The notes below the pieces were generated by a model, which had not been told where the DNA came from, searched no databases, and saw nothing but the letters and a program-made list of their open reading frames with translations. This document shows, piece after piece, positions 6,511 through 47,400 of a stretch of 64,000 nt of DNA. How positions within the stretch are numbered: the stretch's first letter is position 1; each line of letters starts with the position of its first letter. The stretch covers positions 3,865,455-3,929,454 of the forward strand of contig OZ316899.1 in NCBI GenBank assembly GCA_973895155.1. Direction: 5' to 3'. Position numbers and translations under genes: made by a program. This DNA is from Marsupella aquatica. Its lineage: Eukaryota > Plantae > Marchantiophyta.

Positions 6511-6892
6511 CCCTCCCCTTGGTACTCTTTCACTCCCAGAGGTCGGGACTCCCCGCACATACCGCGGATGTCCAACACTGAGACTAAAAATCCCCCCCTT
6601 GCCTCTACTAAGGGGTGCACTAAATACTAAGGGCCAAGGAACGAAGTGCCCTCGCGCCCAAAGATTCGCTAACTAAGGTCCTAACTAAGCTGGCTGTCAG
6701 GCTGGAAAATGGCTTGTCTTATTAGAAGATCCTAATCTACGCAGGTTGTACAGCATGGCAGTGCTGCGCTAACTAGGGCAGGTGCTTGTTCCTATAGACT
6801 AATTGAGCTATTCCTAACTCTACTCTAATCCTACTCCACCGCTAGTGCCTGGCACGCTTGCCAGAGCCGCCTGAGTGGGAACGGCTATCCCG

Positions 6893-18841: not shown

Positions 18842-19173
18842 TGTCACACCATTTAGAGTGGTAGTAAAGTATATCGTACTATCTAGGATATAGAGGTTTT
18901 GTATGTGTGCTATATGAGCACTTTGTGTTTAGTTTGAGTTGGTGTGAGGGATAGTTATCCCCTTGTGTTGGCTCAAAGGCCTCATCTTTCAATGTTGAGC
19001 CTTTGAGCATGAGCTTGGTGGCTATGGTATGGCTAACCAGGTTGTGTGCATGTAACGTGGATTCCTTGAAGCACAAGGTGCATTGGGCTTGACATATATG
19101 TGTGATCGTGTCGGACGGGATCGTTGTTGGATTAGCATTGATCGTTGTTCGATTTCATCCAGAAAAGATTACA
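18842..19173 (+). repeat. Left LTR-B (332 bp)
   Basis: TGTCACACC...GATTACA. Near-identical copy at 34187-34509 lacks 7 internal bases and the terminal CA. Confidence 0.85.
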
Positions 19174-19503
19174 TTGAAAGATCACTGCAGGTTGATTCAA
19201 AGTTGTTTCGAAGCTTGCTGTATTGCAGAGTTGATCCATGGTAGCTTGGATTGTTGAGATCTTGCTGGTTGACTTGTGGTAGCTCAAGTCAGATCAGCCG
19301 TTGGTAGATTGGAGATTGTGAGCTATTGATTGCTCTGAGAGTACAGCGTGGTGCTGTTTGAAGCTCTCTAATAGTTTGTTCATTGAAGTTCTCTCTGGAG
19401 TTGATTACCGGATTGACATTTGGAGCTTCTCGAAGCTATGGCAATGAGGGACTGATTGAAGATCAGAAGGCGCCTCAAGTGGTAGTTGCTACATTGTGTT
19501 TTT

Positions 19504-25500: not shown

Positions 25501-25507
25501 TATAACA
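19504..25507 (-). mobile_element. Copia-1, Bianca-lineage Ty1/copia, full length
   Basis: 169-bp LTRs at 19504-19672 and 25339-25507 with 4 differences, TG...TA ends, TSD TTTTT, PBS CGTTATCAGCACG and PPT AGGGGGAG. Confidence 0.95.
20243..24921 (-). pseudogene. Copia-1 gag-pol (gag, CCHC, PR, INT, RT, RNase H), frameshifted
   Basis: Bianca-type gag DGANYLTWSLD...FIRHHL. Other motifs: CFRCGTKGHLQRDC, IVDSGTSH, WHNRLGHPG, RIQADVCGP, YKARLVAKG, YVDDIN, GYADAGY and IYEDN. Confidence 0.95.
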
Positions 25508-25761
25508 TTTTTGGAGTTCTAGTCCTTATCGATTGCGTTGCAGCATCGCAAAGGCTATTGCGGATTTGAGTTTTGTTGATGGATAGTATACTTTTACGAA
25601 GAAAGTGACAATCAAATGTTGGTGAATTGCGTTGTCGGTGTCACAATGGAGTCCACGTTGCGACGAGGTGCGGCGGCGACCTAGGGCACAAGGAAAACGA
25701 CAATATTGTTGAACAGTGTTTTGGTCCGAGAATTGCGGTGTGTTTTGTGGCGCGCCTTGTT

Positions 25762-26204
25762 TTGGACTGGGATCATCCGAGTCCAATTGTGGGTTGTCTC
25801 TTGAGACTTCATTTTGACTCAAAGTTGGATTTGGATTGGGATCATTCGGGTCCAATTGTGGGTTGTCTCTTGAGACCGCATTTTGACTCGAAGTTGGATT
25901 TGGACTAGGATCATCCCAATCCAACTATACATTGGTAACTTTGGACCCCATTTGGACTTGAGGTTGAAGTTGGACTGGGATCATCCCAATCCAACAATAC
26001 ATTGACAACATTGGAGACTTGATTTTGGGTGAAGGTGAATTTGGATTGGGATCGTCTCAATCCAATTGTATGTTGGCGTATCCAGAGACCTCATCTGGAC
26101 CTTGAAGTGGATTTGGAAAAGGATCAACCCAATCCAACTGTATCTTGGCGACTTCACCTGTGTAGAGGATGTGAAGGACTTGGACTGGGATCATCCCACT
26201 CCAA
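25762..26204. repeat. Array of 7 copies of a 25-bp palindrome (consensus TTGGAYTGGGAT-C-ATCCCAATCCAA), period 67-72 bp
   Basis: Copies start at 25762, 25831, 25900, 25970, 26041, 26113 and 26180. An isolated eighth copy lies at 29398-29422. Confidence 0.9.
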
Positions 26205-26457
26205 CTTGTGGACCGGGCGTCCGGATGACTATTGAATGGATTTGAATTGGAGGTTCACCCCGACGTAGCGAAGTGTGGCGGGTGTGAAGGGCTCCCTTAG
26301 GCTCATCTCGGCGTTTCAAGGCGACTCGTGACAAGGGACGTGAGGACGGAACAGGAGCCAGACCGGAGCGGGCCGCAAGGTAGCTTGTTGGTACGTGAGG
26401 AGTAGTTGACAATTGGTTGGTTTGGAGTGCCTAAGTTGGTGCATAACTCCAAGGGGG

Positions 26458-26517
26458 GAGGTCACCCATCCCAAAGCTATTCCTCTTGCGCGTGCTTAAC
26501 CGTGGAGTTCTTATGGC
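26458..26517 (-). other. 5S rRNA-derived fragment (internal control region, A-box to C-box), not a full gene
   Basis: Minus strand AGAACTCCACGGTTAAGCACGC...GGGATGGGTGACCTCC versus plant 5S AGAACTCCGAAGTTAAGCGTGC...GGATGGGTGACCTCC. The 5' and 3' parts of 5S are absent. Confidence 0.75.
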
Positions 26518-26956
26518 ATGCAGTGTACACACAAGCTTTCACAACTTGTTGTCTAAGTTAAAGGGCCAGGGGGCTTTATACACTTATTAGTTTGTCTAGA
26601 GACCTGTTTTGGGCCAAATCAGAAGCTACTTAGAGGTTTTTGATACTTCTGAATCCATCTAGATGCATAGATTGGATTAATTTTGCATGGATTCTTAGCT
26701 ACAACCTTGGGGCATTGTGAAGCCTATTATGAAGGTGATGGTGATGATTTAGGGCAGATTTGTCATCACGGATTCTTCGGGTGCTACGGAATTGTCCGAG
26801 GGACAGAGGGCCGGTTTCACTCGAAGTGGGGTGCCATTTTGGCCAACAACATTGATAGCAGTTGCAAGTGCAGGTTCAGATAGTGATTCTGACGAGGACT
26901 CTGTGACCAATTCTCCTTGTCATCAGGTGATTGCACCTTTGTTGTGGGATATGGAA

Positions 26957-29469
26957 GAGATGTACGGGGCTACAAAGGGCCCACGACGATACTCTGGTGC
27001 AGTTGGCACGATTGATCTGGATGACTTCATCCAGGAGTTTGATACGTGGTGCTATATGCAGTCATTACGTAATGCCACGTTGTTTACCCCTTTCATGGCA
27101 TGGAAAGGATTATTTCAGCATTTGGAGGGGCCACCCATGGATGACTACCATGAGTTTTGGAAGACTCATTTGGTTGAGATTGAGGCATGGAGGCAGCATT
27201 GGTCGCCTAATTATGTGTCCATCACCTATGGCACTAGAGCGGCTGCCCAACCCATTACTACAACTGTTGCTTCTTCTAGCAACACTAGCCAGAGTGGCAC
27301 ACCATCTACCAGTACCACTCCAACAACATCCACCGCTACTCCTACCGGTGCGATTGTGACAGGGGTTGGAGTTACGCCAACATTTAACCCTGTGGTGGAG
27401 TTCTTTGAAATATTAAAGCAAAACTATCAGGGTGTGAGGACTGATAAGTTGAAGGGTCTCCAGGAGTTTCAGCGCAAGACTGGAGAGAGTCTACGTGAGG
27501 CATACACTCGTATGCGCAGATTAATCACTGTCACCAAGGGAGTGACAGAGGCTCAAGCAGTCCAATTTTGGTATGCAATTCTAGATAGAGAATTGCGACG
27601 TAGAGTGAGAGATGTCACTCTACTTAGGGATGCAAATCCCACATTGGTAGTTGTTTTTACACTTTCAGAGCGCATTGAGCTCAATATGGTGAATGAGAAA
27701 GTGGTGACTTCCGGGTTTGCCAAGGAAGCACCAAAGGCTGCATCTACACCCACATCACAGCCTACTGCACGTAAGAGTCAGAGGGAGAAGCCCACTGCAT
27801 GGGAATCTACCAGTCAGAGACCTGTGCCTTCCTATGCTGGACAGCAGTCAGGATGTTGGACCTGTGGTGGGGATCATGCGCAGTGGTATTGCCCTAATCA
27901 TAGAGGGTCAGGAGGGGCCTCAGCACCTGATCAGCAGCAATGTGATCATTGTGGAGCTCCTGGACACACCAAGGATAGGTGTTTTTCACTCCATCCTGAG
28001 TTACAGAGAGGGGGACAACGCACACATGATCGGGGAAGAGGAGGTAGAGGTGGTGGTCGTGGCCGAGGTATGCCACATGTAGCAAGGCAGGGAGGTGATA
28101 CTGCTCCTGCTGTGACCATAGATCCTAAGGATATTAAGATTGCTCAATTGGAGCAACAACTAGCTGCTATGGCTAGTTCTCAGGTGAGACCTGCTTCTGG
28201 TGATGGGGCTTCTACATCCTATGAAGCTTCCACATCTTATGGGGTTGATGGAGATCTTGCCACTATGGGATTCATGTGTGGCACTGCACACATTGATGCA
28301 TCAACAACTTTGACGCGTGGGGCAGCAAAAGCTCTTGAGCCCCGAGGAGCAATAGTGGAGCTAGATCCACAGAGGGGGGGTGCACGTCGGCAGACAAAGC
28401 TTCCTCAGTCTTTTACATTGTCAGAGACAGTACAGACTGCCTCTATGAACCCGGTTCGGACAAACCCTAGTGTGGGTCAGTTGGCAGAATCAGGTAGTGA
28501 TGCAACAGGGATGACAGGTACCTTGCTGGGGGCGGCTACGACCATAGTGCGCACCCCATTATTTTCAGCGACAGACATGTTGAACTTGGGAGTTGGTCCA
28601 GCTGATGCGTTGAGATTGGTAGCCACATTATGCGAGGATACTCCAATTTTGGCTTCTCGTGCAGAGGCAGCATGCAGTTCTAGAGCAGAAAAGTTGACAC
28701 CACCTACTGCTACTAGTGAGACCTGGCATGCAGCAGCAGCGAGGTTGGTGGATTTACCAGCACGCCCTGCATTTGAGAGGACTAGGTTTAAACCTAGTGT
28801 TGTGTCATTGGATAATCGGAGTGGTATCTTCCGATTAGTTGGGCCTACTGGAGCCATATACCAGCCAGAGAGAGTGTTACTAGATACTGGTGCTCAGCCC
28901 TTGATGTTGGGTAAGTCAACGGTACGAGGATTGGCATTGCATCCAAATGATCTGGAGGAGTGTCCCTTTCCTATTCAGACTTCATTGGGGGACCTACACC
29001 CACACAGCACATCACCAGACGACCACTTGAATTGAGGATTCAGGAGGGTCATGCCAAGGATAGCTCCCACATACAGGCGCAAGCTATTTTGACTAAGGCC
29101 GAGTTGTATGATGTGTTGGTGGGATGTACAGTGTTATACCCCATGGGATTTATTCTTGATTTTTGGGATGAATCAGTGTCATACAGACTTGATTGGCAGT
29201 CAGGAGATGCTCGATTGAGCAGGTTGCCAGTGCAATTTAGTGGACCTGTGGGAGGCTCTAAATTCACACTATTGTCTTTGGCAGCCTTCAGTGGTGTGAA
29301 CACTGGTCCTGATGATTTGACGGAGGGTAATGCACATGCAGCAGATGTTCCATCAGTGGAGGAGTCACATGAGGAGCAAATGGTGCGAAGGAGCAACCTG
29401 GATTGGGATCATCCCAATCCAACTAGTGTTGTGCCACCAGTATGGGGTACTGCACAAGCCTTGCCGTAG
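26957..29469 (+). pseudogene. Gag, two CCHC knuckles, aspartic protease and linker of the DNMT-gypsy
   Basis: FQRKTGESLREAYTRMRRL, CWTCGGDHAQWYC, CDHCGAPGHTKDRC and VLLDTGAQPLMLG. Frameshift near 28990; TAG at 29467. Confidence 0.88.
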
Positions 29470-29481
29470 AGGGCAGCACAA

Positions 29482-30747
29482 TTGGTACATGATGCATGGC
29501 GTCATGCTTTTACACCACAGTCAGGAGCAGAGCAATCTCCTACAAGTGGGCCAGTGACTCTTTCACCATTGGATACCATCCCTATTGCGTGGCAATATCC
29601 ACCAGAGGGTATTTGTTTGCTCGATCTATTTGGTGGAATTAGCACTGGATTGGCTGCTGTTCTTCAGGCAGGAATTCCTATGCGTCGTTACTTGTATGTG
29701 GAGACAGATGAGACAACACGGAGAGTCTCATTGCGCCATGTGGCTATGTTGGTAGAACGTTATCCACAGTTGTTGCCAGTGGATGCTGTTCGTGGCTATC
29801 AACATGCATTGCCGGCTGATATTTTATTGCTGGGGGCGGATCATTTGGACCGCGTTGGCCCCATTGATTTGGTGATTGCTGGTTGGCCATGTCAAGGCCA
29901 ATCAAGAGCTGGAGTTGGACATGGACTTCATGATCCACGCTCTGCATTGTTTTGGGAGATGTTACGGGTATTGCGTCATCTCCAGTTACATCAAACACAT
30001 TCCCCTGCCTACATTTTGGAGAATGTGCCACTATTGGGTGATGAGCGTCATCGACTTGTTGCTAGTGTTCATCAGGTCAGATCTTGGATTGGACCTGCTG
30101 TATTATTGGATGCTGCACGTGTGGGTTCTCGTGCACATTGTCCACGCTTGTGGTTGACTAATTTGTTACCTTGTGAAGTGTTGAAGCAAGCATTTGATAG
30201 CATTCCTCGCTCAACATCCTTGGTGGTGGATGATATTTTGGATCCAGGGCGTTGTGCACAACATGTGACCCAGTCTGACAGATCTCCATTGGCAGTGGTC
30301 AATGTAGTTGGTCGTCCGCGTTGTGCATTACCCACTTTTGTGAGCCATTCTGCTTCATATGCATTTAGAGCAGGTGGGCCTGGACTTGTATGGGATACAA
30401 CGCTACAGCAATTAGTGGAGCCTACTGCTGATGAAAGAGAGCGTGCTATGGGATTTTTGACAGGCACTACTGCAGTTGCCTCAGTATCAGAGAGTTCTCG
30501 CCGCCAAGTCCTTGGTCAAGCCATGGATTTGAATTGCTTGACTTGGATTATCAGCTTGGGAGTAGCTGGACAGTTGCGGATGCGCTCTGCTGGTGTTACT
30601 GATCGTCCATTAGTGAGCTTGCGGTCCATTGAGACAGTGATGACCACAGTTGGGGGCGAGCAGATAGTCCATGGACCTATGGCAGGATTAGCCAAGGCTG
30701 GACAGATTGTTGAGCAAGAAGGGACTGTTCAATCTACTGCTAAATAG
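29482..30747 (+). CDS. C5-cytosine DNA methyltransferase domain (DNMT3/DRM-like) within gypsy pol
   Basis: Motif I LLDLFGGISTG, II YVETD, IV DLVIAGWPCQGQS (catalytic PC), VI ILENV, VIII SRAHCPRLWLTN, IX ERERAMGF and X RRQVLGQAM, in canonical order. Confidence 0.93.
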   Translation: MVHDAWRHAFTPQSGAEQSPTSGPVTLSPLDTIPIAWQYPPEGICLLDLFGGISTGLAAVLQAGIPMRRYLYVETDETTRRVSLRHVAMLVERYPQLLPVDAVRGYQHALPADILLLGADHLDRVGPIDLVIAGWPCQGQSRAGVGHGLHDPRSALFWEMLRVLRHLQLHQTHSPAYILENVPLLGDERHRLVASVHQVRSWIGPAVLLDAARVGSRAHCPRLWLTNLLPCEVLKQAFDSIPRSTSLVVDDILDPGRCAQHVTQSDRSPLAVVNVVGRPRCALPTFVSHSASYAFRAGGPGLVWDTTLQQLVEPTADERERAMGFLTGTTAVASVSESSRRQVLGQAMDLNCLTWIISLGVAGQLRMRSAGVTDRPLVSLRSIETVMTTVGGEQIVHGPMAGLAKAGQIVEQEGTVQSTAK

Positions 30748-30795
30748 CAATCATCAACTATCTCTTCTACCCTACAAAAAGATATTAGGGATCTG

Positions 30796-32307
30796 GTGGA
30801 GAGTTGGGAGCCACAGATTGATCCTAAGTTGACTGGGGAGGAGAGACGTCGCATGCATCGATTCTTGAAGAGTTACTGGAATTGTTTTGCATTCAGCATG
30901 AAGGATTTGGGGACATTGAAGGGCCCTGGTATTCAGATTGAATTGGCTAGTGATGCACCAATCTTTCGTAGACCATATCGTTATAGTGACATGGAAAGAG
31001 CTCTGATTCAGAGCAGAACTCAGGATTTGTTGGAGGCTGGTTTGGTGGAGATCTCATACGGGGAGTATGCATCTGCCATAGTGATGCCAGCCAAGAAGGA
31101 TGTGCATGGTAATTACACGGATAGGCATATGTGTGGTGATTACCGACCTATTAATCGTTAGACAAAATCTGATCGATATGCCATGCCCACACCTGAGGAG
31201 ATCTTTGATGCAGTGGGGCATGCAAAGGTTTTTAGTTCATTGGATCCGAGGGCAGGGTACCATCAGCTTCCAATCAGACATTCTGACAGGTCCAAGACAG
31301 CATTCTGGGGAATTGATTCTTATGGCAAGGATCGTTTGTATCAGTGGTTGTTCTTACCATTTGGGTTGAAGAATGCACCAGCTAAGTTCCAGAGAGTCAT
31401 GGATCGAATCCTTGCAGGTTTGGATTTTGTTAGATGTTATATTGATGATATTTTGGTTTATTCTTCTACTATGGAAGAACATCAACGACACTTGCAGATT
31501 GTGTTTGAGAGATTGAGGGAACATGGATTGAAGCTCCATCCCGGCAAGTGTAAGTTCTTCCAAGACCAGATTGAGTATTTGGGCCACACTATATACCCAG
31601 GGGGATTGGGTGTACAACAGACTAAAGTGGAGGCCATTACACAGATTCCTCGTCCTACTGATGTGAGCAGAGTTTGTGCATTCTTGGGATTGGCGAGCTA
31701 CTATAGGAGGTATGTTAAAGGATTTAGCCAGCTTGCTAAACCTTTGACCATACTCACTAAGTTGGATCAGGAATGGATTTGGGGTGATGATCAGGAGCAT
31801 GCCTTTCAGGAGTTGAAAGAAAGATTGGCATCATCCCCTATTTTGAGAAGACCCATTTCAGGGAGACCATTTCAGCTACACACTGATTGGAGTGGAGTAG
31901 GACTTGGAGCAGTGCTGACTCAGAAAGATGATGAAGGACATGAGTTTGTTGTGGCATATGCCAGTAGATCAAACAATTTAGCAGAGGCTAAGTATAGCTC
32001 TTATGAGAGAGAGTGTTTGGCAGCAGTGTGGACTGTGGCACACTTCCGTTGTTACTTGTTTGGTAATCCTTTCACTTTGATCACTGATCATCAGCCTCTC
32101 AAGTGGTTAATGGAGTCTGACAAGCTTACAGGGAAGCTTGCACGATGGGCATTGTTGTTACAGGAGTATGATTTCCAGGTGGTGCATAGGCCTGGAAAGG
32201 TGAATTTGGATGCAGATGGGTTGAGCCGCAATCCATGTACCATTCAGGAGGATGAGACTGGAGCCAGATGGCATGATGAGTCAGATAAGGAGATGGTGTC
32301 AGGATGA
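30796..32307 (+). pseudogene. Gypsy reverse transcriptase and RNase H
   Basis: MCGDYRPIN, LDPRAGYHQ, LPFGLKNAP, CYIDDILVYS, FQLHTDWS, YSSYERECLA and TDHQPLKW. In-frame TAG at 31159 and TGA at 32305. Confidence 0.95.
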
Positions 32308-32352
32308 CATGCATCTGCCTTCCTTTGTTGGGTTCCAGCATGCAGTGGTTCT

Positions 32353-33872
32353 GTGGACTCTACTTCATTGGATGAAGCAGATGATGAGTCTTCAGATGTG
32401 GATGTTGGTGATGTAACTTTTGGACAACAAGATATTCACAATGATGTGAAAGTGTTGGAATATCTGCGCAGTGGTTCTATTGTTGGCAGTATTGATGCCA
32501 AGGAACGTGACAGGGTTCTACAGAGAGCCAAGAAGTTTCGATGGGAAGGAAACCATCTTTTGAGAGTACTACGTGATGGTAAGGTATTGGTGGTACCAAA
32601 ACCATCACAACGAGTACATTTGGTGTGACATGCGCACGAGGAGTTAGGGCACTTTGGTGTCAAGCGCACTTATAGCTTGTTGCAGACACAGTATTGGTGG
32701 CGTGGTATGCACACTGATGTTCAGCAATTGATAGCTAAGTGTGCGGTTAGTGATCGAGTGCGAGCATCATTTAATGCTCCCACTCCCCAATTGCATCCAT
32801 TGCCAACATGGGTTTGGGGTACAGATGGAGTTTGGACTTTGCTGGTCCATTGTCTCTCACCCAACGACATAACCGTTATGTTTTGGTTATGGTGGAGCAC
32901 TTCTCCAAGTGGATTGAACTAGTGGCATTGCCAAATAAAGCTAGTGGAGGAGTGGCTACCACATTTCTAGATCGAGTACTCAGTCACTTTGGAGCACCAG
33001 CTGAGGTGTTGACTGATCAGGGCACGGAATTCCGTGGAGATTTTGAGAGTTTGTGTGAGCAAGCTCTGATTGACCATCGTACTACTTCTCGCGATCATCC
33101 TGAGGCAGATGGATTGGCAGAGAGAGTTGTACAAACTGTGAAGAGAGGATTGCGCAAGTATGGCTTACAGGTTGGTCATTTGGGAGACTGGGATTTCCAA
33201 CTACCTTGGTTAGCTATGGGCTACCATTTCAATCGACAAGCATCACTTGCATCCTTCTCACCCTATTTCTTGCTCTATGGTAGAGAGCCAGATTTGCCAG
33301 CGGCTATTCATCGTGATGTTGCAACTGTTGTGGGTTTGGATGATCCAGATATTTGGGTAAAGGTTTGTTCAGAGAGGGCACGAGTTTTTGAGAGAGTCAT
33401 GCCCATGGCCTTTGACAACCTTGCTATTGCCCAGCATCGTGATACTTTGCGATATGCTACTATTCGTGGAGGAGGTTATCGCACGAAGATTAGGAGATTT
33501 CATCCTGGCGATTATGTTTATTTGCAGCAGACAGCACCAACAACGCTTGATGTGACCGCAGGGCGGACAATCTTGCGTGTGCATGAAGTGTTGCCTTCTG
33601 GAGTCCTTATGTTGGAAGGGCGTGATGATATGGTTTGGAAGGATCACGTGCGTAATTGTGCGCCATGTCACCTTCCAAACATTGATGGCACTGTGGATCC
33701 AAGCTTGGCACATGTTTGTGCTAGCTTGAAGTGTATGTTGTGTGGGTCTGCTCAGGAAGCAGCTACTATGTTGATTTGTGATAAGTGTTCTAGAGGATGG
33801 TACATGTCGTGTTTGACACCACCCTTGCACATGATTCCTAGCGGATCATGGTTTTGTCCTCAATGTCGGTGA
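32353..33872 (+). pseudogene. Gypsy integrase with a C-terminal PHD finger
   Basis: HEELGHFG, YWWRGM, WSLDFAGP, LTDQGTEF and GLAERVVQT. C-terminus CMLC...LICDKCSRGWYMSC...WFCPQC is a C4HC3 pattern with His replaced by Tyr. Confidence 0.92.
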
Positions 33873-34048
33873 TGCCGACTAGTTATCATTTGTGTTCTTG
33901 TGGAAAATATAGATTGCAGGTAGGTGATCGATGGGGCTCACTTGCACCCGGCCTCCTGATCTTTGCACCTACAAAGGTGTATATTAACCTTGTAGAACTC
34001 ATGGCTAGCTAGAGTTAGGGGACCTCACTCCCAGCTTAGGGGGGCGAT

Positions 34049-34646: not shown

Positions 34647-35563
34647 CCATGCTTGTGGGGATGTTGCTACTTCCCACCTATCTTACCTAGTCTTGCCTAT
34701 ACCAGTTTAGCCAAACTGGTAAAACATATATAAATTGTATGCATTATTGTATACCCCATTGGGGTCCCGCTGTAAGCATCATCATTTTGAAAACTTGTGT
34801 ATCTTGTAAGTTAGCCCTATCTTGGGGTTGTCTACTTATAATTCCTGAATGGATTTTTAAATATATATTTTTCTGTTTTATAATACACATGGGTATGGCC
34901 ACCGAGACACGAAACAGGAAAACAGGAATTCTGGTAGCAGATTTTTTTTTGCTGTTATTAGGAATAGGTTGCTGTTACCAGGAAAAGTTAGTCATTGGAA
35001 TAGGATAATACTTCATTACTTCAAGCCAGATACATCTGCAAAAAAGCAATATGCATTATGCTTCATTTACATTCTAGAGCTTAGAACCAACTAACAGGGC
35101 AATAATTGTTGTCTGATGATAAGTGAGCCCGGAATCACCAACATACTTCTGGAAAATAGTGTCCCAAAAACCACAAACACACAAACATTTACCAGTGAAT
35201 GCCATGGGAAAAAACATTGACATGGTCGGTCCCACCATAAGTAACATAATATTATAGGCCAACAATAAGGCAGAAAACCAGAAATGAAAACTTTGGACAA
35301 TTTGAAAGACCATCGGCGATGGGCTAGCGCCTGGCGCTAGCTAAAATGGAAACAACCAACCCATTTAGAAAATGACATTGGATGAATGCATAATGTGGGA
35401 AACAAAAATTTAAAATATCATTTGTAGTGATAGGATTACAATGAAGTAAATGATAATAAGGAAGACTTCCATCCCAGCGCCAGGCGCTAACATAAAACTA
35501 TACCATTGTAATACGACAAAAACTAATATAACCGTTTCAAGTATAGGACAAATATATCCTTCT

Positions 35564-38500
35564 CTATAAACCATGAGCATTCTCCCTCTCCAAGATCAGT
35601 CGGACTTCTCCAACTATGAGAATTGGTTGGCTGGTCAAAGTAGATTCCTCAATGTCTAGTTTGAAAACGGTTTGGAAAACCCAGTACAAATGTTTGCAAG
35701 GCATATATGGATGTCTGCGAGAATGTCGACGATAGAAATCCTCACAAGAACAAGTCGGGAAAATACAAATCTGCACAAAGTAACTATTCGGCGTCCTTAG
35801 ATTCTCATGTGTTTGTACTTTGAATTGCTTCCCCCATGAGTTCCCAATAGAAACATCCCACTATCCCTGGACGGACATGGTCTCTTTTCTTGCAGATTCA
35901 ATCCTCTTCATGTGACCATGGGTCAAGGTCGATCAAGGAACCGTGTTCTTTCCATTCCGACTTTGGAGATGAACAGTGGGTTCCAAAAGATTCACTCTCT
36001 CTGGAAATAAGTTTACGTTGATTCAAAGCTCAAAAAGTGATGGTGAAGGTAGAGGACCGTCTCTTCCTCGGGCTATAGGTATTCCCTGGTCAACAAGATA
36101 CTTCATCTCAGCTTCCGAAACATTTGTTCCTTTTATAACAGGAAGAACATCAGGAACGGAGGGCAGGTTCACTACACCACGGCGGGGACGGCCCCGATAA
36201 CATGTGTTGTTTGGGCAGAACCATATCATTTCGGCTATGGGTTCCCCCCTGAACATGCGTTGTCCTTTGACAACAATTCCAATGACACCATTTGATGAGG
36301 GGAACCCAACTTTCTTCACTCTATTTCGACACTCATCTCTCTCGGAACTACTGCCAAATGACGCGTTGCATTGTGGACCGGCCCCAAATCTTGATGTCCA
36401 ACGCAAATGCCATGAACCCTGCATGACTTCTGTTTCAAGAACTAGAGATTGGAGCGATGTCTGCTGAAGTATAGTGGAGGCGCTTTGTGGGTATTGTGTT
36501 GAACGTGATTGATGTCGACTCTGCGGTGTACTGAAATCATCACGATCTACATCCCTCAAATCATCACTTCCTGAGAGATTGACAACGGAAATGTCATCAG
36601 GTTTTTCTTCCAATACGGAAGCAAACTTGTGTGGTGCAGATTTTTACGCTTGATTGATCTGGTATTCGGCGATGTGATAAGGACTTTATCATGCTGGTGG
36701 GAGTCTTGTGGCAAGACAATCCCAGTTGCAGGTCCTTTCCTCTTGACAGACTTTGTTAGAACATCTCCATTGAGAGGAACGTTTCTCTCCAAGTCAAACT
36801 CAGCTACATTGGAGAGGAGCATGTTCATCGCATCCTCGAACAGCTTTGGGGAACCTGCCTGGTCAGCTGAACGGAAAGCCAGTTCCCATATTGTAGGACC
36901 TCTTCCTCTACTCAATCCTTTCTGATATGTGGTATATGCTGCAACCTGCGATATAGCTCGATTCTGATCCATTTCACATGCCTCAAAGAGCCCAACTTTT
37001 TTTTTCATTACCCATGCTTTCATTCATGCGTGAACAAACTCTGACCCGGTACAGTTAGGAATCCTAGCGCCTTCTTCAGCACTTTTGTCCTGGAACGACA
37101 AAGCATCAACACTAGTAAGAATCCGCAAAACATACTAGCGCCAGGCACTAGGCAGAACATTTAGACAAAACCATCAATATTATTGTGTAATCACATGTTT
37201 ATGAAAATAAACAGGTCAATATTTGAGAATCAATTACATTATTTGGATTCTTTGGATGGAATGTTGAGGAATGTCATCTGAAAAATGTACTTCTACAAAG
37301 CAATCTGACTTGCATATTACTAGCGCCAGGCGCTATTACTCACCAAGTGAATAAAATTTCCCCACTGCCTCCAATGCACGACCCACCACGATATCCAACT
37401 CTGAAGCATTCGGAGCTTTCCAGGTAAGCAATTACCCGACTGCCACCATAGGTCAATCTCTCTTGAAAGTCAGTAAGCCTCTACAAATGTCGGTGCGTTC
37501 CGTAATTTATCCCATAGCATTCGATGTTCCGCCTGCTTCTCTTCCAACACTCCTTCAATAGAATGGCGATGAAAAGCTTGGTAAAAATGAAAAGCGCCCG
37601 TCCTCTCCTGTTCAGGGTTTGGGTGCCCTCCAAAAAAAACATTTCGGACTGCTAACCATCCGGCTTGGGCATTGTCTACCATGAAGCCAAGAATGGTTGG
37701 ATTATCTAACCCATTCTCTTTGGAAACCTCAATCATTAATCTCCAAGCCTTCTCGAACGACGCCATGTCCTTGGCTTTTAGCTCGCAAGTAAATATTGTA
37801 CACAATGTGCGGTAATTGTGATCGTAAACGTGTGCGTTGAAAGTCACCCAATCCTTGGTCATTTGTTTCATGACATCGAAGCTTACCCAAGCACCTTCAA
37901 GCATCCCTCCAGGTTGCATTTGCCGCAAAAGATCCACCCCAGACCCATGGCCTTTGGAAGTCATCTTAAATATGTGAGGTCTGTCTTCTTGAGATCCTTG
38001 ACCTGGAAGGATGTACCTATGTAGAAAAGGCATGTTGATATTCTTTTGATACCAAACAAGAAAATCCAACTCTCCACGGCCTTTCTGGTCCTGCCTAACA
38101 CTCCTGAAAAGAGATGCAAACTTTTGTGGAGTAGAAACTACCATTAGAGACTGGAAAATCTCTGTCTCTTTGATATCTTCAATCTCACCCAAGCTCTCAC
38201 ACAAAGACTATACAAAAGATCCTGTCGCTACATTTTTAATCCCGGTAGGCGTCCAAGTCAGATTGCCTTCCAATTTCTTTTTTATGACATCTTCAACTAC
38301 CTTTTCCGCACTCCGGGAAAATACCTTACGACAAGGATGGTTGTGGGTGCCCATATGAATCGCAAGGCGAGACATGTGACTACAGGTATCTGAGTCAAGC
38401 AGAACTTGAGGATACATATAAAACAGTCTTGAGCATGCCTCTACACAAAAAGGGAGCTGCTGGCAATAATGACAAACAACTCCACCCTGCTCAATGAATG

Positions 38501-39119
38501 ATCCAACACGGTGAGAGCCTCCAAGTTTTGGGGTACCAGCCCATGCCTTTGCATTCCTCCTCTTCTTTCGGCGGAAGTAGTCACAAGTTTTATTCCTGCA
38601 CTCAATAAATCCAGTACAAGTGACTTTACCAAATTCCCAGTATTTCTTGGGCTGCACGTTTGTAGTGGTAGGAAATATTCTAGTCCAGATGTAGCAATCC
38701 TTGGTTCGGTCCATGTCCCGTAGACGGGATCCTTTTGAAAGAATTCCTGACGATGGAGGCAACTCAAACACTACGTTTCCATTGTACTTTGACGGCAAAC
38801 AAGGTACTTGTTCATGCCGGAAGTTTCCAGCCAAAATGAACCTCGAAAGTTTGTTGGACCCAGTTGACTTGAGCAGCGCGTCCATTGCACTTCTCCGGTA
38901 TACAATATGGGATTGCGACGATGGCATCTCCTCTTTGACAAAGACCACTTCAGGCGCCGAAGGCTCCACGAAGGGGATCCTTGGTGGCTCCTCATCATCA
39001 CTATCAGAAAGAGCAACTACATCCATCGGATCCCTTTGAGGGGATTGTCGATCTCCTTGATTTGGTTCCCGAACGACAATGGAGTAGCGCAACCCAGCAT
39101 TAAGGTGCCAAAATCTCAC
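35564..39119 (-). pseudogene. MULE-2 transposase (GCM-like, DDE, SWIM), spliced, with stops and frameshifts
   Basis: KVTCTGFIECRNKTC...CHYC...HMGTHNHP; SFDVMK, GFMVDNAQAGWLAVRNVF and AFHF; SWIM CSCEDF...CKH. Intron GTGAGT at about 37345. Confidence 0.88.
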
Positions 39120-40422
39120 CCCGTCATAGACATCAAAAAGTGCAACAGATTCAAAGTCATTGGCTTCCGTTCCCTCCTAAATGATTGCCTCTATGTCATT
39201 CATGCGCAAATCAAACCTTCCACAAAGATAAACCTCACTTATGTGCCTGTACCTTTCAGCCACAGACACTGGAATGGAAACAATGTCGCCGGTGGACATA
39301 CGGGTAACTACGATTGACTGAGACATCACAGAAGCCTCGGAAGCGAATGAGTGTAGGAAAATTATGAATCAAAATTCCACCGACGAGGACTGTTATCGAT
39401 CCTGACTAACAGTTCCCTAAAGCCGTTATAATAAGACAATCCTCTGACACCATAAATGTGTTTTGTCGTTATATCAACGTCATTTACGATCAACGGCATT
39501 AACGATAAACGTCATTTAGGAAGAACCCTTTTGTTCTAGAAATATCATATGATGAATAGTGCCAGGCGCTATTAAAAACATTGCAAAAGTAGAGGTCCAT
39601 GCAGAGTCAATTTATGTTCAGCGCCTGGTGCTATTCATAACAATCCAAAAGGTTGGGGTCCATCTAACGTCAATTTATGTGTAGCGCCAGGCGCTAATAA
39701 AAGCAAATGACATAAAACAAATTCCTAACGGAGACCCTGGATGATTAGCGCCAGGCGCTAATATTGATATCATTCATATTATGAACGTATACAATGGTAA
39801 AAACTACAAGTATGAGGCTTCAAAAGGATGGAAAAAGGCTTTGTTTTTTGCTAGCGTCGGGCGCTAGTTTTCTTTTGTATCAGAAATATGAGAAAATCGG
39901 ATTTTGGGGAAAGTAATGGCATATTAGCGCCTCTTATGGCTCTATATTGAATTCCCAACTGACATAAAAATTAAAGATTTTAGGCCTTGGAAATTACTAG
40001 CGTCGGGCGCTACTATTTGGTGAGTAAAAATTAATTCTATATATTCTCAGGTTTTCCTTTCAACGGTCATATTCAACGGTAACTATAGGTTGTGTGACCC
40101 TCAATACATCGATCCCCTTATGTGTTGTCAAATAAGATAACGACATGTGTCATAGATCCAGGCCAGGAGTTCAGTTTCCTTAGCATATATGTCATGCTCT
40201 GTGCTCTAGATTCTTCTTATTTCCCATGTTAAGAATAGTATGATCGATGCTGTGTGACGGGTTTTTGCCGTTCACGGTACGGAAAGAGCGCGGTGGTCAT
40301 CAGTGCTTCCTTTGCCCTTGTGCGAGCAATGGACCTTGCCTTATCCTCCTCTCAATGCTAGTGGAAATGGACACAGAGAGGTCGTTCCCTCGCAAACATC
40401 TGAGTGCTCATTTTCAGGATCT

Positions 40423-43400
40423 ATGTATAGTCGTCGAGTGACTCGATCCACTGCTTCGCGAGCCCCTGAAGCAGAACCCATTGTATCGTTCCCAAATAGC
40501 AAGAGAGGGAAGATGGATGATTCTGATTTGTTTGCTGTGGAGGACTTTGGAGAGACGTCGCTGACTGTTTACGATGTGATCTCCAAACACATTATGTCGT
40601 TTGGAAAAGATTTCTGAGGACATGACAAGGATCCGCCAAGGATTCCAATGTGCCAACTACTTCATATGGAAGTAGTGTGGACATTACAGAAGGGAAGTCC
40701 TTCGATAGAGAAGCTGAAAGACTCCTTTCAGAGCACAGGATACAATTCTAAGATCGGCATGCTATTTTACGTCCAACCAACAGATTCCAATGGTGATGTC
40801 CAGATCTGCACGCCAGAGATTCGTGCTTCCTGGGATGCAATTTGGGTTGCAGAGAACAAAAAGTTTGAGGCGGAATGCGCTGCCGACCCTGACTTCTCCG
40901 TCCTACAGGATAAGATGTTTTCTGTGTTTGATGGAAACCATCGACTCTACGCATGGTCCATCGTCACGAAGGAGAATCCGGATGATGTGAAATACCATCC
41001 TCGCATCCAGTGCACAATATTCAAGGGAGAAAAGGGGTCCTTGATCGAGATTGAGGTGGCGATGCACACTGTTAACCAGTAAGTGTCTCTTCCAATATAT
41101 TTCTATTCTAATCTATGATCACAGTGTTTCACTAGCGTCGGGTGTTACTGACTCCCTCTCTCGTTTTCAGGCTTGGGCAGGCAGTGGTCGAACCCTCTTG
41201 GATACTTGATGCAGACCGTATCAACCAAATTCTCTCAAATGAACTCAATTACTACAAGTCTATCATTGACGCTGCAAACTTCAAGAAGTTTGGGCAGATC
41301 ATGCAGAAAACACGGAAGGGATCGTGGTATACAAAAAAAATGCCTCAAGAAGCGCTTCTGTACATCTTGTGTGAGAATAACATCAAGTCTTATTCTAGAC
41401 AGTTTAAGATGGATCTAGAACATGCTGCTGCTCAAGGTACACCTTGGTCTCCCGCAGAGATTTCAAAAAGACATGCAGCGATGATGAAGGAGGCAACAAT
41501 GGATTGGGCGATAAAGGTGTCAAAAATCACTCCTCTGTTAAGCCCTACTTTTGAGGATTTCATGCGGACATGTGCTGAGATGTACCCCCTCACAGAGAAG
41601 AATAAGAGAGAGAAGAAGCCGGATGCAGTTGTCTGTACAATGGATCAAGCAAGATTGTTTACCGCTGTCTCTGCCCTCGACCCCAAGCTAAGGAGTACCC
41701 TTTTGGTTGCCCATTGTACACCGGAGCTGAGGAAACAATTCTTCCATCCACAGAGCGTTAATGACAATCCAGTGAAGCAATGGTGCCATACCTGGCAAAC
41801 TTGGAACACTGTGGAGGGAATCGCTATTGGTTTGCTGCAAACTTCCCTACGCCAGGTCAATGATATAGTCCCCGCCAATCGGTTGCAAGAGTGGGAGTGT
41901 GAGTCAATTGAATCGCTTATTGAAATAGTCTCAAATGACTTCAAGAAATTTGGGGACACTGTGAAAGGTAAGTTTTTTAATACAATGTGGCCTTCCAAGT
42001 ATCTCGACAAGGTTGATTACACCCTCAAGAATCAGAAGAGGGCCAAACGATACCTGTACCGTTTCTTCATGCATATGGAGATTGTGAAGCCAGATTACTT
42101 TTGGGCATACCCTGCTGCTTTCCAAAAGTGGATCGTTGTTCCTGAAGGAGACATACTGGCCGACATGTATTCAATGTATCCCGCTAAAGGGTGTCTTCCA
42201 CCAAGGAAATTGTCAGAATGGGAGAGAATTCATTGTCCTTGGTATTTGGACACCAATAGATGGGACTCTCCATTCGGAGACATTGAGAAAGACGCATTTC
42301 ATAAGCTTTCAAAGTCTCAGGTCCCTCCCAAGTTTGTGTCCAACATGAAGCAGGGAATCGAAGGTGGTGTGAGCAAGTTGGCGACAGAATTGCAATCGGT
42401 GTGCGAAACTATGGTTGTTCATGTTGATCAAAGTCGCAAACCCAGAGCCAAAGCAAAAACCGAAGCTGCGGCACCGAGTACCTCAACGCGGTCCGCCAAA
42501 AAACGTAAGTTGTCATTCAGCTTGTAGCTTCACATTTTGGTTAGCGCCAGGCGCTGCTATATGACTATGTCTATTGGTTTGTTTTTTCAATTGGTTTGGA
42601 CAGCGCCTGGCGCTATTATTCAGCATTGAATAAATTCTGCTCTTTTTCCTTTAGGTGGGAGAAAGTTTGACGCTGCAACCGACGAAACAAAAGTAGATGC
42701 CATAGCCTTCCGAAGCCAATACCGGTGCCTAGTCAGACCCAGTAACTCCAATTGACAAAGCAAAAGAGATCGTCCCTCTTGATGCAACCAGTACAAAGAA
42801 GAAGAAGAAAAAGGCAATTCAAGTTGGAGAATCTTCCCGAGATGATGCCGCTGGAACTGGTGTTTAGAGAGATGTGGGAACCTTCAAGAGCAAATCTTCT
42901 AGGCATTGCATGGTGGAAACAAGTATCCAAGAATTTATTGATACTGCTTTCAACAAAGCAGCGAAACCAGATTGGGTGACTGATGCAGAGAAATGGGGAA
43001 AGGACTTAATCAAGTCGGGTTCCCGAGTAAAGGGAGTAATCAGAGGAGGAAAAGAAAGATCGTTTGGTGTCAATGCAGGATTCATCTATCTTCCTACTGG
43101 ACTTAAACCTACGCTCATGGACCGTCGGGTTCCAAAGTGGAATGTACCAGACCACACAGTTCCCAGTTCTTTCTTCAAAGCGATGGACCCTTTCCTTTCT
43201 GATGATGGCATGCTTGCGATCTTGTATTCAGATGACCATGACCAGGTCTTGCAGGTCATTTCAGCATGCCAGCAGTCAAAAAAGTTCCATTGTGTCAATT
43301 CTCACAATGTCGTCATGTCTATGCCCATGTACAGAGCAAAGACCGATATTCAGGTACAGATCGTTTTATCTCTTGTTTATTGTTAGCGCCCGGCGCTAAT

Positions 43401-44434
43401 TTAGTCTTTGCTGTAGTTCTCGAAACATTACCCGTCGGTTGATAATTTGAGCCAAACGTGTGCGATGCGTGCAGGTATTTACCCTTAGGCTAGACATATT
43501 TTGTCGGACTTCTTCAAAAGGAAAGGTACCAAAGGATCCAAGGTTTAAGCCTCTATCAATAAGTGAAGATCCTTCGATCTCTAACTTGATTGGGCTCCCA
43601 ACCTTGAAGACAGATCATTGCCCGGAGTTGGATTTTGCTGGGAATGCCTGTCTTTCGGTTGGTTTTATGTAGTCGGTGATAGAGCTTTTTACTCTTCCTG
43701 GAGATATTGTCCTTGACTGGACTGTAGGTTCAGGAAGCACATTCATTGCTGGTGATTTTTCTGGTCGTTTCGTGATTGGGTTGGAAAATAGGCGTGAGTT
43801 TGTTGAGACCGCATCAAGGGTTTTCTTAGAACTTCTTGATCCCAGGCATGTTCCGATATTGCCTCCTCCCGCGACCAATTTAAGTGGTCGCAAAAAGAAA
43901 GATAGACTCCAATCTGTTCTCAATTTTGATTCCGACGAAGAGGAAGGTACCTCTGGAGATGTCGGAGATGACACAGAGAAAACACAGGAGGAAGATTCTT
44001 CGGAGAAGAGCGAAGACTCAGACGAGTAATGTTCTTCCAGTAAGCTTCTTTATCCTTTCAAGTGTTGTTGACAATTCTGGGTTCTTGCTCTCTTATCTCC
44101 TAAACTCATATGTTTTTCCGTTTTACTGGATCAGGTCAGAATGGAATCCGAGGAAGCGTTTCCAACTCCGGAGGAGACTAGATGGAATGTAATTGTCACT
44201 CCTGAGAAGCCGTTTGTTTTGCCCTCATATGCTGAAAATGCCGCTAGGAGGGTTGACAAAATTAGAACTCTTTGTTGGGAAACAAAAGGTCTACGTCTTC
44301 AGAGGGGAGCAGACAGGAAGTTCATGAGGAACCCTTATATAGATGATGTTTCCCAAAGCAAGTACATTGATGACGAAGCCGCGTCCACGGACAGATCTGA
44401 AAGCTCCGCATCAGAAACATCTGGTAGTTTATAG
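40423..44434 (+). pseudogene. Multi-exon gene: N-terminal ParB/Srx-like domain, uncharacterised central region, beta-class N4/N6 amino-methyltransferase domain and acidic tail
   Basis: ParB-like SVFDGNHRLYAW. SAM-binding motif I region ELFTLPGDIVLDWTVGSGSTFIAG...GRFVIGLE, upstream FLSDDGMLAIL segment. Frame-preserving GT-AG introns at 41079-41170 and 43354-43474; further probable introns at 42505-42654 and about 44030-44135. In-frame stops at 40615 and 43670 and in exon 3. Confidence 0.8.
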
Positions 44435-47400
44435 GTAGAAATGGGGTTTTCTTCAAATACGTCATTTAATGTTTCAATATGTAACCATTTTGATGAATTG
44501 GCTGATTTTAAGCCCTTTCAACTTTTACTAGCGCCAGGCGCTCCTCAAACATACTGTCACTATTATATTTTTATTTCAGATCCTTGAAGTTTGAGTTGTG
44601 AAGACGTGTTCTCAGGTGCAATATTGGCTAGCGTCGGGCGCTTCCCAATTTTCTAAGGGTTCTTGGGTGTGGATTCTTTCCGGGCTGTGGTTGCATGAAT
44701 GTTTTGTTTTCCGTCTGATTTTGTGGTATTAGGTGAGCTGGCGGGAATAGTCATGGATCTTTGCAGCTAGATGTCTTCTGGAAAAACCCTGATCGGGAGG
44801 AGGCTAGAGTAGACAATGGTTGTCAACTGGGATGATTGTAGTAGTGCCAGGCGCTAATGAAAGGTTTTGGTTAATTATAATTGACTTAAATAGCATTCCG
44901 AGATCGAACATTTCATAACCCCCTTCATTAAATATCCTCCGAGAGTGCAATTGGTACAAATTATAGACTCTTCATAGCGCCCGGCGCTAGCAATAATCGT
45001 GGAGAGTTCCTACTGGTACGAGTTTCTTATATTTACTCCTGTTTGTTTTTTTGGTGTCTTTTAAAAAAACCTCGCCTTCGGCGCTATTTTTACCAGCGCC
45101 GGGTGCTACCAGAATTTTTTTTCAAAAGTTTGAGACTAGAATTTTCCTGTTACCAATCTTTTTCCCTGTTACCAGTTTCTGTTATGAATGCCTGTTTCCT
45201 GTTTTCCTGCCTTTTGTAAACACCTCATACACATAAGGGTGCCAAAAATTATCATAAAGTAAATTTTTAGATATAATAAGGGTAATGTAAATGAGGGAAA
45301 AAATACTAAGAAGGGGGGCAAGGGGGCTCCGGTCGCAGGGGGTTCACTTAATATACATAGAGTGAGGGCCCAGGGGGGTCAATGCATGAGATGCTTGCTT
45401 TGAATTGGGATCAAGAGGCAACTACAAAATTGAATTAAGCTGCTATAGCTTCAGGCATGGGATGCTCATCAGAATTGGCTGGCTGCCTTGATGTTGCTAA
45501 TTGGAATAGAGCTATGGCTACTGATTGGATAAAGTTGCTTGCTATGGAGGAATAGGTTGCTGCTGATCAAGAGGTGGCTGGCTGCTGCTCATCAAAATAG
45601 ACTGCTAATAATCTGAATAGGCAGCTGCAAAATTGAATTGAGGCTAGCTCGATTCTGAGAATAGAGAGGTTGTTGGCTAGCTGTGAGCTATATATGGTGG
45701 GCTACGATGTTGAGTGGGCTAAAAAATTGAAGGGCTAGCGGCTGATCAGACTGACTGCTACACAAGAATTAGAAGGGTTGGCTTCGGGCACGAGATGCTA
45801 CTGCTACACAAATTGATGTTGATTCAATGTGCTACCACGAGAGAATGCTGCCGTTTCAGATTGAATTCAAGAGAGGAGAAAAACAGCTGCAAATTTGAAT
45901 CGGCTTCTTCCCCACTCTTTCCCTGCCATCCCTGGATCCTTACCAACTTCATAGCTCTTCCCTAAATATATCTCTTACCCCCAATCGTAGCTCTCTATTA
46001 CTCCCTGAGTCCTTGCATTTGTAAGCCGTCTCTCTTCTCCCTTTATAAACTCCACTCCCCTGATTGATAAGAACTTGGTCCTTACGAGAGTCGTGGCCCT
46101 GGTGACACTTGGAATCCCTATAAGGGGCGTGTAAAGAGTAAGTGTAATTGCGACATGGTTTATACCTACTTTACACCAAAAAAAGGCCAAATGAAAATGG
46201 GCATAACTTGGGCTAGGGGCATCTGTTGGGGCTTTGTGTTAAGTAAAGGGAAGGTAAGGCACCCCTTAGTGAAGGTGGAAACCCAAGAAAAGAAACACCC
46301 AAAGAAATTCTTAGTCGAGGCCAAGAGGGGGTCCCGATAGCTTACAAACCGGAGCCGATATAGGGGAATGAATACCAGATTTAGAGGCTGACCTTTCTCG
46401 CACCCATACCACTTTATTTAGGATCTAGGGAAGGGTACTTACCCTTGGTCCAAGGTGTAAGGCCAACAAGTTAAGAGAAGTAAGCATAGAGGGTAGTTTA
46501 CTTAGGGTAGTAAAAGGGTTACAAGTAAAATAAGGTCAACTTTGACTAGGCATAACTTGAGACTCACTCACTCTTTTGGCAAGCTTTCAAGTGGGTTAGA
46601 AATCTGGTGAGGAGGACCATAAGTGGGAGCTGGTTTGGAGGTCAAAGCATGCAACTCATGTGCGACATATTCCAGGGCTTGGAAGGAGTCAAAACAATAG
46701 GTTGTAGAGTGGGCTATGAACTATAGATTTGGACTTTGTGTGTTAGGAGGACTTGGGGGAAGTGTAGTTGGACCCCAGGTCAAGCTTGGTGTGGTGTGGA
46801 AGGAGAATAGTATATAAGGTAGAAGTTTTCCTTTATTAAGGGCCCATAATTCTCAGTTCTCAATGTATAATCTATACCTTGCTAAGTTGGGGCTAGGCTT
46901 GAGAAGGAGGTGAGGGTTTAGGTCAGCCTCTAAATCTAGGTGGAAATGAGTGGGTTCCTAACATTTACAAAGAATACTACAACTGGTGGGTGATAGCGGG
47001 CGAGACGCCAGGAGAAAGGGATGAACCGTCTGAGATAGCGAAATAAGTTGCGTTACCAGCGTTGGGCTTGCCGTCAAATTGATGTAGTGATGGCAAGCGA
47101 TGCGAAGGCAACCGAGTGGGAGGCTGCATATGAAAGAGAATTAGGGCAGCCGCTTATTTTACAAGGAGGATGGATTGATGAATAGAACTAGGTTAGGAAG
47201 AGGAGAGTAGCTCAATAGAATCACGGTGACCATTGCCCCATTCTTAGGACCAATTGTAAAGTATTTAAACCCCTGGTCCAAAGCAATGAGGGGGGAACAT
47301 TATTCAATTACATGGCATGCAGTATTTGCAAGCAGATTCGCGTTGATGTGCAATGTTCTTTTCCCATTCTGATAAGTCAATCTTTATTGAATTTCTAGTG

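Follow-up and report, generated by a model that had tools for sequence, protein, structure and literature searches.

A Mutator-like transposon of the liverwort Marsupella aquatica with a methylase-like accessory gene and lineage-specific palindrome arrays

Algal precedents and the liverwort element

Transposons that encode an accessory protein with a ParB-like and a DNA-methylase domain are known from algae. In Ectocarpus, Sola1-1_Ec32 encodes a 1104-amino-acid (aa) protein of this kind on the strand opposite the transposase; a suggested role of this protein is to bind and modify the element that encodes it (PMC12477816). The Plavaka element of Bostrychia moritziana carries a ParB-2-oxoglutarate (2OG)-oxygenase gene, PAG3, with inverted-repeat arrays alongside that were proposed as self-binding sites, and encodes a separate adenine-methylase-SET protein, PAG2 (bioRxiv 10.1101/2025.02.11.637652). 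ParB-like plus methylase accessory proteins have been reported more generally for green and red algal transposons (PMC12477816; bioRxiv 10.1101/2025.02.11.637652), and Iyer et al. noted ParB-helix-turn-helix-fused Dam-type methylases in chlorophytes and chytrids. Our literature search found no report of a ParB-methylase accessory gene for land plants or for bryophyte Mutator-like elements (MULEs). Here we analyzed 64,000 nucleotides (nt) of the liverwort Marsupella aquatica (contig OZ316899.1, positions 3,865,455 to 3,929,454 of the forward strand; hereafter the window, numbered from its first letter). The evidence supports positions 34891-45226 as a MULE holding two head-to-head genes, a transposase and, beside it, an accessory gene with ParB-like and DNA-methylase-like domains, which we call open reading frame 2 (ORF2).

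ORF2 resembles the Ectocarpus protein in lying opposite the transposase, in its size (both about 1,100-1,200 aa), and in its order of domains, ParB-like and then prokaryote-type N4C/N6A methylase. The likeness is one of published description. The Sola1 carrier belongs to a brown alga, whereas this MULE is related to liverwort elements, and the ORF2 family shows a degenerate catalytic tetrapeptide throughout together with an array of palindromes. PAG2 and PAG3 share with ORF2 a ParB-homologous N terminus fused to a DNA-modifying-type domain, with inverted-repeat arrays adjacent; they are, however, two proteins, whereas ORF2 is a single polypeptide in a MULE whose palindromes also lie inside introns. 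A different kind of parallel is offered by VANC of the Arabidopsis VANDAL MULEs, which binds motifs in the noncoding DNA of its own MULE family, these motifs differing between related families (PMC5735166). Short motifs have likewise amassed in the noncoding DNA of the six ORF2 element lineages examined, but those of VANC lack palindromic symmetry, the protein has neither methylase nor ParB ancestry, and homology with ORF2 is not expected. Given the similar proteins of Ectocarpus Sola1 and of green and red algal transposons, an earlier reading of this DNA from the sequence alone (hereafter the sequence-only reading) went too far in calling it the best candidate for an undescribed system. What the present elements add is an occurrence in land plants, a catalytic motif that has degenerated, and palindromes that differ from lineage to lineage.

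Structure, decay, and conservation of the element

The element was flanked by an identical 8-bp direct repeat, ATACACAT, read directly at 34883-34890 and 45227-45234, a target-site duplication within the range of about 8-11 bp typical of MULEs. Its terminal inverted repeats were imperfect: local alignment of the left terminal and subterminal region (34891-35010, plus strand, with GAAACAGGAAAACAGG sub-repeats) to the reverse complement of the right one (45110-45226, minus strand) scored 53, compared with 28.6 +/- 5.3 and a maximum of 47 in 300 shuffles. This similarity began about 14 nt inward of both ends, the outermost 13 nt being dissimilar, and GAAACAGG-type sub-repeats fell within the aligned ends. 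Contigs from four public runs were compared with positions 40000-45300 of the window only; since the match to three contigs of other family copies ended exactly at 45226, the right terminus was fixed independently. Over this interval the contig pieces at 90-99% identity numbered from hundreds to thousands, with a very high summed word depth, so the element family has a high copy number in two organisms. All four runs behaved as DNA (introns evenly covered, without GT..AG joints) and inform copy number and variants only.

The duplication, the inverted repeats, and the two head-to-head genes had all been described in the sequence-only reading and were recovered here: a minus-strand transposase (39119-35564) and a plus-strand gene (40423-44434) with DGNHR and GDIVLDWTVGSGST...GRFVIGLE. 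That reading also called the element complete, which stands for its structure but not for its coding capacity, ORF2 having three stops and two frameshifts and the transposase at least one stop. This copy is thus structurally complete and coding-dead, and it belongs to a high-copy MULE family related to families in liverwort genomes.

Reading of the sequence against homologues gave a predicted five-exon model of ORF2 (plus strand; all introns GT..AG), the intact product of which would be an accessory protein of about 1,180 aa. Exon 1 (40423-41078), aligned with homologues, encodes the N terminus and the ParB/Srx-like domain with its DGNHR motif. Intron 1 (41079-41170; 92 nt) joins the frame as CA/G and coincides with a gap in the protein alignments to contigs L001, L003, and L006, where the ParB-like domain ends and the middle domain starts. 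Exon 2 (41171-42504), also placed by homologue alignment, encodes this middle domain of about 440 aa, which is rich in conserved Trp; intron 2 (42505-42654; 150 nt) contains palindromes at 42543 and 42602. Exon 3 (42655-43353), aligned with Riccia proteins, encodes a basic linker and the N-terminal half of the methylase-like domain, in which YLPTG stands where DPPY would be expected. Following intron 3 (43354-43474; 121 nt; palindrome at 43385), exon 4 (43475-44025) encodes the C-terminal half of that domain (VLDWTVGSGST, GRFVIGLE; PF01555 match) and an acidic tail, and exon 5 (44135-44434) a conserved C-terminal tail (..PSYAE..RNPYIDD..) that aligned with the tails of Riccia proteins P0029 and P0118 and with L003, L006, and L010.

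The window copy of ORF2 is a pseudogene, with three stops in frame and two frameshifts; the earlier description of a spliced gene was to that extent overstated. The lesions comprise a TGA at 40615-40617 in exon 1, read through in homologues; a 5-nt deletion at 42702/3 in exon 3, where the extra letters of family contigs restore the frame; a TAG at 42865-42867 in exon 3, where family contigs carry C in all four runs; a TAG at 43670-43672 in exon 4, where L003, L006, and L010 have CAG for the Q of a conserved GFMQ; and the loss of 1 nt at 44183 in exon 5, every family contig having a further A after this position. Because family contigs carry the intact letters, these lesions are copy-specific. 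Of the three stops, those at 42865 and 43670 have a known intact letter, and both arose via a C-to-T change; variants among the public-run contigs of the family were mostly transitions, a combination that fits decay of a methylated repeat. A short intron that would remove the TGA at 40615 was also considered and rejected: the only GT..AG pair spans 34 nt and is out of frame, and homologues read through this position.

The MULE-type transposase gene (35564-39119, minus strand) was recognized as ORF pieces at 39119-38211, 38204-37473, 37023-36559, 36613-36026, and 35776-35567. Its first two pieces share one frame and are separated by an in-frame stop (38208-38210); a sister copy of the gene, elsewhere in the window, reads through this position without a stop, and the window transposase is therefore damaged as well. 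The SWIM domain PF04434 matched the transposase at 18.0 bits (E = 0.0021), under the Pfam cut-off of 19.6, and the CxC...CxH pattern was kept in the sister copy. For the central piece, all best named language-model clusters were those of the MULE domain PF10551 (score 0.94); the transposase pieces had no Pfam match to the PF10551 DDE domain at E <= 1. Identity was 38-54% to the sister transposase (9922-15198, plus strand) and 32-51% to the transposases of the Calypogeia and Riccia elements. The sister gene is truncated at its 5' end, near position 9900, and has an interruption from about 10965 to 13100; within the window no ORF2 homologue adjoins it. Two copies of another palindrome, GCTAGCGA-GG-TCGCTAGC, lie at 13492 and 15426 in this truncated sister MULE.

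Contigs L001 and L005 of Riccia sorocarpa and L006 of Calypogeia fissa carry homologues of the transposase and of ORF2 head to head in the same orientation, at 25-51% protein identity, and the pairing is thus conserved across two liverwort classes. Riccia sorocarpa alone had more than 45 ORF2 gene models, with full-length homologues such as a 1207-aa protein; KAL3677308.1 is an example of an intact ORF2 from this species. Comparison of the middle domain with a 64%-identical Logan contig (L002) over 220 codons gave a nonsynonymous rate (dN) of 0.24 and a synonymous rate (dS) of 2.35, the latter saturated, for a dN/dS of about 0.10. One-off capture of ORF2 was rejected because of this conserved pairing and the dN/dS value, in keeping with the stable accessory gene that had been proposed from the sequence alone. 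When relatives outside this family were sought by profile and by word, Riccia proteins and a single metagenome contig were all that came back, and the only named matches to the family were from Riccia and Calypogeia. As a side observation, L003 carries, immediately downstream of its ORF2 homologue, a DUF659 (hAT-associated) gene (6035-6946, minus strand) that may be a nested neighbor transposon.

Domains of ORF2 and the palindrome arrays

Descent of the ORF2 C-terminal domain from a phage or bacterial beta-class N6/N4 DNA methyltransferase is sound, because Pfam, Protein Data Bank (PDB) profile, AlphaFold2 (AF2)/Foldseek, and hhalign results agree. The C-terminal piece matched PF01555 at 31.4 bits (cut-off 26.7; E = 2.4e-7), over 46 residues only, and a Pfam search of all ORF2 and transposase pieces returned nothing beyond this match, to the last 46 residues, and the weak SWIM match. 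A family profile of the C-terminal domain (alignment A1) found, among PDB sequences, M1.HpyAVI (E = 1.2e-4) and CcrM (E = 1.5e-3). An AF2 model of the Riccia methylase-like domain had a predicted local distance difference test (pLDDT) of 65 and a predicted template modeling score (pTM) of 0.69; the top 43 Foldseek matches to it were all permuted-fold DNA amino-methyltransferases (E = 1e-8 to 6e-5), among them M1.HpyAVI, CcrM, M.MboIIA, M.RsrI, M.PvuII, bdelloid N4CMT, and type III Mod subunits. Alignment by hhalign to a cyanophage DNA adenine methylase had 89% probability (E = 2.4e-6, 192 columns), and the language-model features of the domain likewise pointed to N6_N4_Mtase. Foldseek, hhalign, and the PDB profile agreed on a permuted Rossmann fold, with catalytic strand 4 ahead of motif I, which binds S-adenosylmethionine (AdoMet). 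Motif I and the acidic residue after strand 2 were present in the window (VLDWTVGSGST...GRFVIGLE), with equivalents in Riccia, L003, L006, and L010. The beta-class, prokaryote-type origin put forward in the sequence-only reading, with PF01555 as the profile to check, was thus borne out.

In its permuted fold, motif I, and acidic residue, ORF2 resembles bacterial and phage beta-class enzymes (M1.HpyAVI, CcrM, M.MboIIA, M.PvuII) as well as the eukaryotic N4CMT and DN4MT1. DN4MT1, a host enzyme of Marchantia, carries TSPPY, and the paper on bdelloid N4CMT states that the enzyme is without eukaryotic homologues. Whereas these enzymes have DPPY, SPPY, or TSPPY (DN4MT1), the ORF2 family lacks the aromatic residue there; it also differs in about 900 extra N-terminal residues, in its introns, and in being transposon-borne rather than a host gene.

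Motif IV was located by hhalign, which set the DLPTG of the Riccia proteins opposite DLPYG of the phage enzyme, and strand 960-964 of the model agreed. All 12 Riccia copies had D[LM]P[TS]G (DLPTG or DMPSG). The window had YLPTG, as did the 64%-identical Logan relative; Calypogeia had FLPNS, and two metagenome contigs had CFPHN and STPTN. Across these six lineages P alone was invariant, no Y, F, or W occupied the fourth position, and none had the canonical (D/S/N)-P-P-(Y/F/W). The motif I segment, G-D-[IV]-V-[LI]-D...G-x-G...G-R-x-V-[IV]-G-x-[ED], was 53-61% identical between lineages, compared with about 31% for the catalytic half. We read this as AdoMet binding probably kept and canonical amino-methyl transfer probably lost, and a conventional writer of N4-methylcytosine (4mC) or N6-methyladenine (6mA) appears unlikely. 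The replacement of (D/S)PP(Y/F) in all six lineages makes 4mC or 6mA marking a less likely mechanism, which weakens the earlier suggestion that the element marks its own copies in this way. METTL14-type pseudo-methyltransferases similarly have a degenerate catalytic motif on a methyltransferase fold and are kept as nucleic-acid-binding partners. METTL14 has, however, lost AdoMet binding, whereas motif I is the best-conserved segment of ORF2, for which no partner enzyme is known.

Toward the N terminus, the motif D-G-N-H was invariant and the following R nearly so in 12 aligned sequences (the window and 11 homologues; alignment A2), a motif of the D-G-x-H-R type that in the ParB/Srx superfamily follows a beta-strand. 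Searches of the domain against Pfam, NCBIfam, PHROGs, PADLOC, and PDB profiles gave no significant match. The nearest were TIGR03187 DGQHR (E = 0.021; 14.6 bits, cut-off 58.9) and a PHROG 'ParB-like partition protein' (E = 0.15-0.18); tblastn against phages gave a single match at E = 3, and the AF2 model (pLDDT 43.9) was too poor for a fold search. Language-model atlas features placed the domain with ParB_N, DUF6551, and DUF3723 clusters (0.90-0.96). The ParB/Srx-like assignment made from the sequence alone is therefore retained as a reasonable lead, drawn from the DGNHR motif and sub-threshold matches. Language-model neighbors of the domain (residues 170-335 of protein P0108) included fungal DUF3723, an accessory gene of Starship elements, as well as unnamed cnidarian and mollusc clusters; ParB-like domains carried by transposons may thus form a family that is more widespread among eukaryotes. 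The middle domain had 105 homologues at E <= 1e-3 (alignment A3) and, in profile searches, neither a Pfam family nor a PDB match.

A further feature of these elements is a family-specific accumulation of short motifs in noncoding DNA, of the kind associated with VANC and TnpA. The window element contained 18 palindromes that fit (T)AGCGCC-N-GGCGCT(A) at one mismatch or fewer (35326-45107); 100 shuffles yielded none, and the rest of the 64-kb window has no further copy. All 18 lay outside the five exons of ORF2 and outside the homologue-matching pieces of the transposase, being placed instead in subterminal DNA, a transposase intron, the intergenic region, introns 2 and 3 of ORF2, and the 3' region. 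Six of them form a cluster in the intergenic region, the divergent promoter (39558-40011). The flanks of the palindromes were unrelated, the 15-bp site alone being kept, and a tandem-repeat finder run on the element returned nothing relevant; the palindromes are therefore not parts of conserved repeat units. All eight single mismatches among them were C>T or G>A changes at CG or CCG.

Comparable arrays were found in related elements, each with its own sequence. The Calypogeia element had TAGCGA-NN-TCGCTA within a 24-bp palindrome (23 copies, compared with 0.01 expected), ENA contig L003 had TAACGA-NN-TCGTTA with a YR center within a 26-bp palindrome (20 copies), and ENA contig L010 had TAACGG-NN-CCGTTA (9 copies). 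In Riccia, L001 combined CAGCGG-N3-CCGCTG (9 copies, near the ends) with CGGCGA-N3-TCGCCG (6 copies, intergenic), and L004 and L005 had CGGCGG-N3-CCGCCG (6 and 11 copies, respectively). A 5.3-kb partial contig, L008, had no palindrome with three or more copies. Every site has a CG in each half-site, the two being 6-7 bp apart. The array is thus recurrent in these elements, while its sequence turns over between lineages (six lineages, 6-23 copies each).

Two further observations concern individual arrays. In L003 (33-5809) the central dinucleotide of the palindrome was CG (7 sites), TG (8), or CA (4), and the TG and CA forms look as if a central CpG had been deaminated. The CpG of either arm was intact in all 19 exact sites and in the one-mismatch 20th site. 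In Riccia L001 (4255, 8573-9228, 14354-15079) the two palindromes occupy separate compartments, one only near the two ends and the other only between the genes, which hints at two binding specificities.

Elsewhere in the window, ORFs resembling the gag (with a CCHC zinc knuckle), protease, and reverse transcriptase of a long terminal repeat (LTR) retrotransposon were seen at 2226-5800 (minus strand), in a GC-richer block of about 0.50-0.55 GC over 2-10 kb, and a 384-aa ORF lies at 7714-8868 (minus strand). Across the long interval 16000-34000 the GC skew stayed positive throughout (0.12-0.25) and the AT skew was strongly negative, reaching -0.31 at 20-24 kb.

Proposed function and its meaning for the family

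We give about even credence to the following reading as a whole: the window holds a decayed MULE copy, and the ORF2 of its family would be a non-writer, a dimeric binder of the element's own palindromes that serves the element. In this proposal, ORF2 would no longer be an ordinary 6mA or 4mC writer and would act as a dimeric, possibly AdoMet-dependent, sequence-specific DNA-binding factor. It could then activate its own copies or protect them from silencing by host cytosine methylation, in the manner of TnpA of En/Spm or VANC of VANDAL, and/or help to assemble the element ends for transposition. The most economical reading of the arrays is that a symmetric dimer encoded by the element binds them, and the binder is probably one of the element's own proteins. 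ParB-type proteins bind palindromic sites, and methylases of the CcrM and M1.HpyAVI type are dimers; on these grounds, and with sites in the promoter and introns, ORF2 would be the better candidate. A more specific version, which we hold only tentatively, makes ORF2 a phage-type ParB-methylase fusion whose dimers read private, rapidly evolving palindromes spread over the promoter, introns, and ends of the element. By way of AdoMet binding and perhaps a noncanonical reaction, the dimers would keep host CG/CHG methylation off the element's own copies or else mark those copies, with protein specificity and palindrome coevolving by subfamily.

Several points weigh against the proposed non-writing binder. 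The window copy itself is unable to make the ORF2 protein, and splice junctions are predicted and expression presumed. The ParB/Srx assignment is sub-threshold (TIGR03187 E = 0.021; PHROG E = 0.15-0.18; pLDDT 44), and the AF2 model of the methylase domain is of moderate quality (pLDDT 65). The strong conservation of the AdoMet motif would also fit an active enzyme with an unusual catalytic loop. Finally, the link between ORF2 and the palindromes is one that we infer, and the transposase may be the binder, a 2026 preprint having reported a MULE transposase as itself a sequence-specific activator.

This last point leads to an explanation that we regard as unlikely overall, namely that the palindromes are transposase-binding sites, subterminal or internal, as in Ac/Ds or MuDR, with ORF2 doing something unrelated such as chromatin or nucleic-acid binding or ParB-like nicking. 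Besides the reported activator, the restriction of one Riccia L001 palindrome to the neighborhood of the ends, the usual place for transposase sites, speaks for it (the other palindrome being intergenic only), as do the palindromes at 13492 and 15426 beside the transposase of the truncated sister MULE. That copy is truncated upstream, however, and no palindrome-bearing element demonstrably without ORF2 was found; moreover, sites extend beyond the termini, over the introns of both genes and the promoter, and perfect palindromes suit a symmetric dimer, for example of ParB-type or beta-class methylase proteins. About as unlikely is that ORF2 remains an active amino-methyltransferase whose 4mC or 6mA, at or near the palindromes, marks copies or blocks host C5 methylation. 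The beta-class fold, the intact motif I with its acidic residue after strand 2, and the AdoMet-binding half as the most conserved part of ORF2 all fit such an enzyme, and the CG and CCNGG within the palindromes are plausible cytosine targets. Riccia copies also keep D-x-P, and the closest phage relative found has DLPYG rather than DPPY, so the second position of motif IV is tolerant. The aromatic fourth residue, however, is gone in six lineages (T, S, N, or H), and the first varies (D, Y, F, C, S) in a way unexpected of a constrained catalytic residue; in (D/N/S)PP(Y/F/W) enzymes both of these positions contact the flipped base. As for ORF2 being a passively captured, functionless fragment (Pack-MULE-like) or a neighboring host gene outside the element, the many stops and frameshifts of the window copy could suggest this. 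It is nonetheless largely refuted and very improbable: the lesions are copy-specific, with intact letters in family contigs; the same pairing and orientation recur in Riccia and Calypogeia at 25-50% protein identity; dN/dS is 0.10; and the target-site duplication, inverted repeats, and palindromes enclose the gene.

The liverwort elements extend the ParB-methylase architecture, noted in brown, red, and green algae, to land plants, in two liverwort classes and a related genome. A methylase domain that has kept its AdoMet-binding part while losing the canonical catalytic motif is of mechanistic interest, and it carries a warning for annotation, in that a PF01555 match on such genes should not be taken as evidence of 4mC or 6mA. 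With six lineages each possessing its own palindrome array, the family offers testable pairs of protein and site by subfamily, in relatives of the tractable model Marchantia. If ORF2 turns out to be a sequence-specific reader that can be programmed and that changes the methylation of its targets, transposon anti-silencing would have been invented independently a second time, and the protein might serve as a tool for epigenome targeting. And if its dimers do target the element's own palindromes, the family would be a land-plant counterpart of VANC built on a different, prokaryote-derived chassis.

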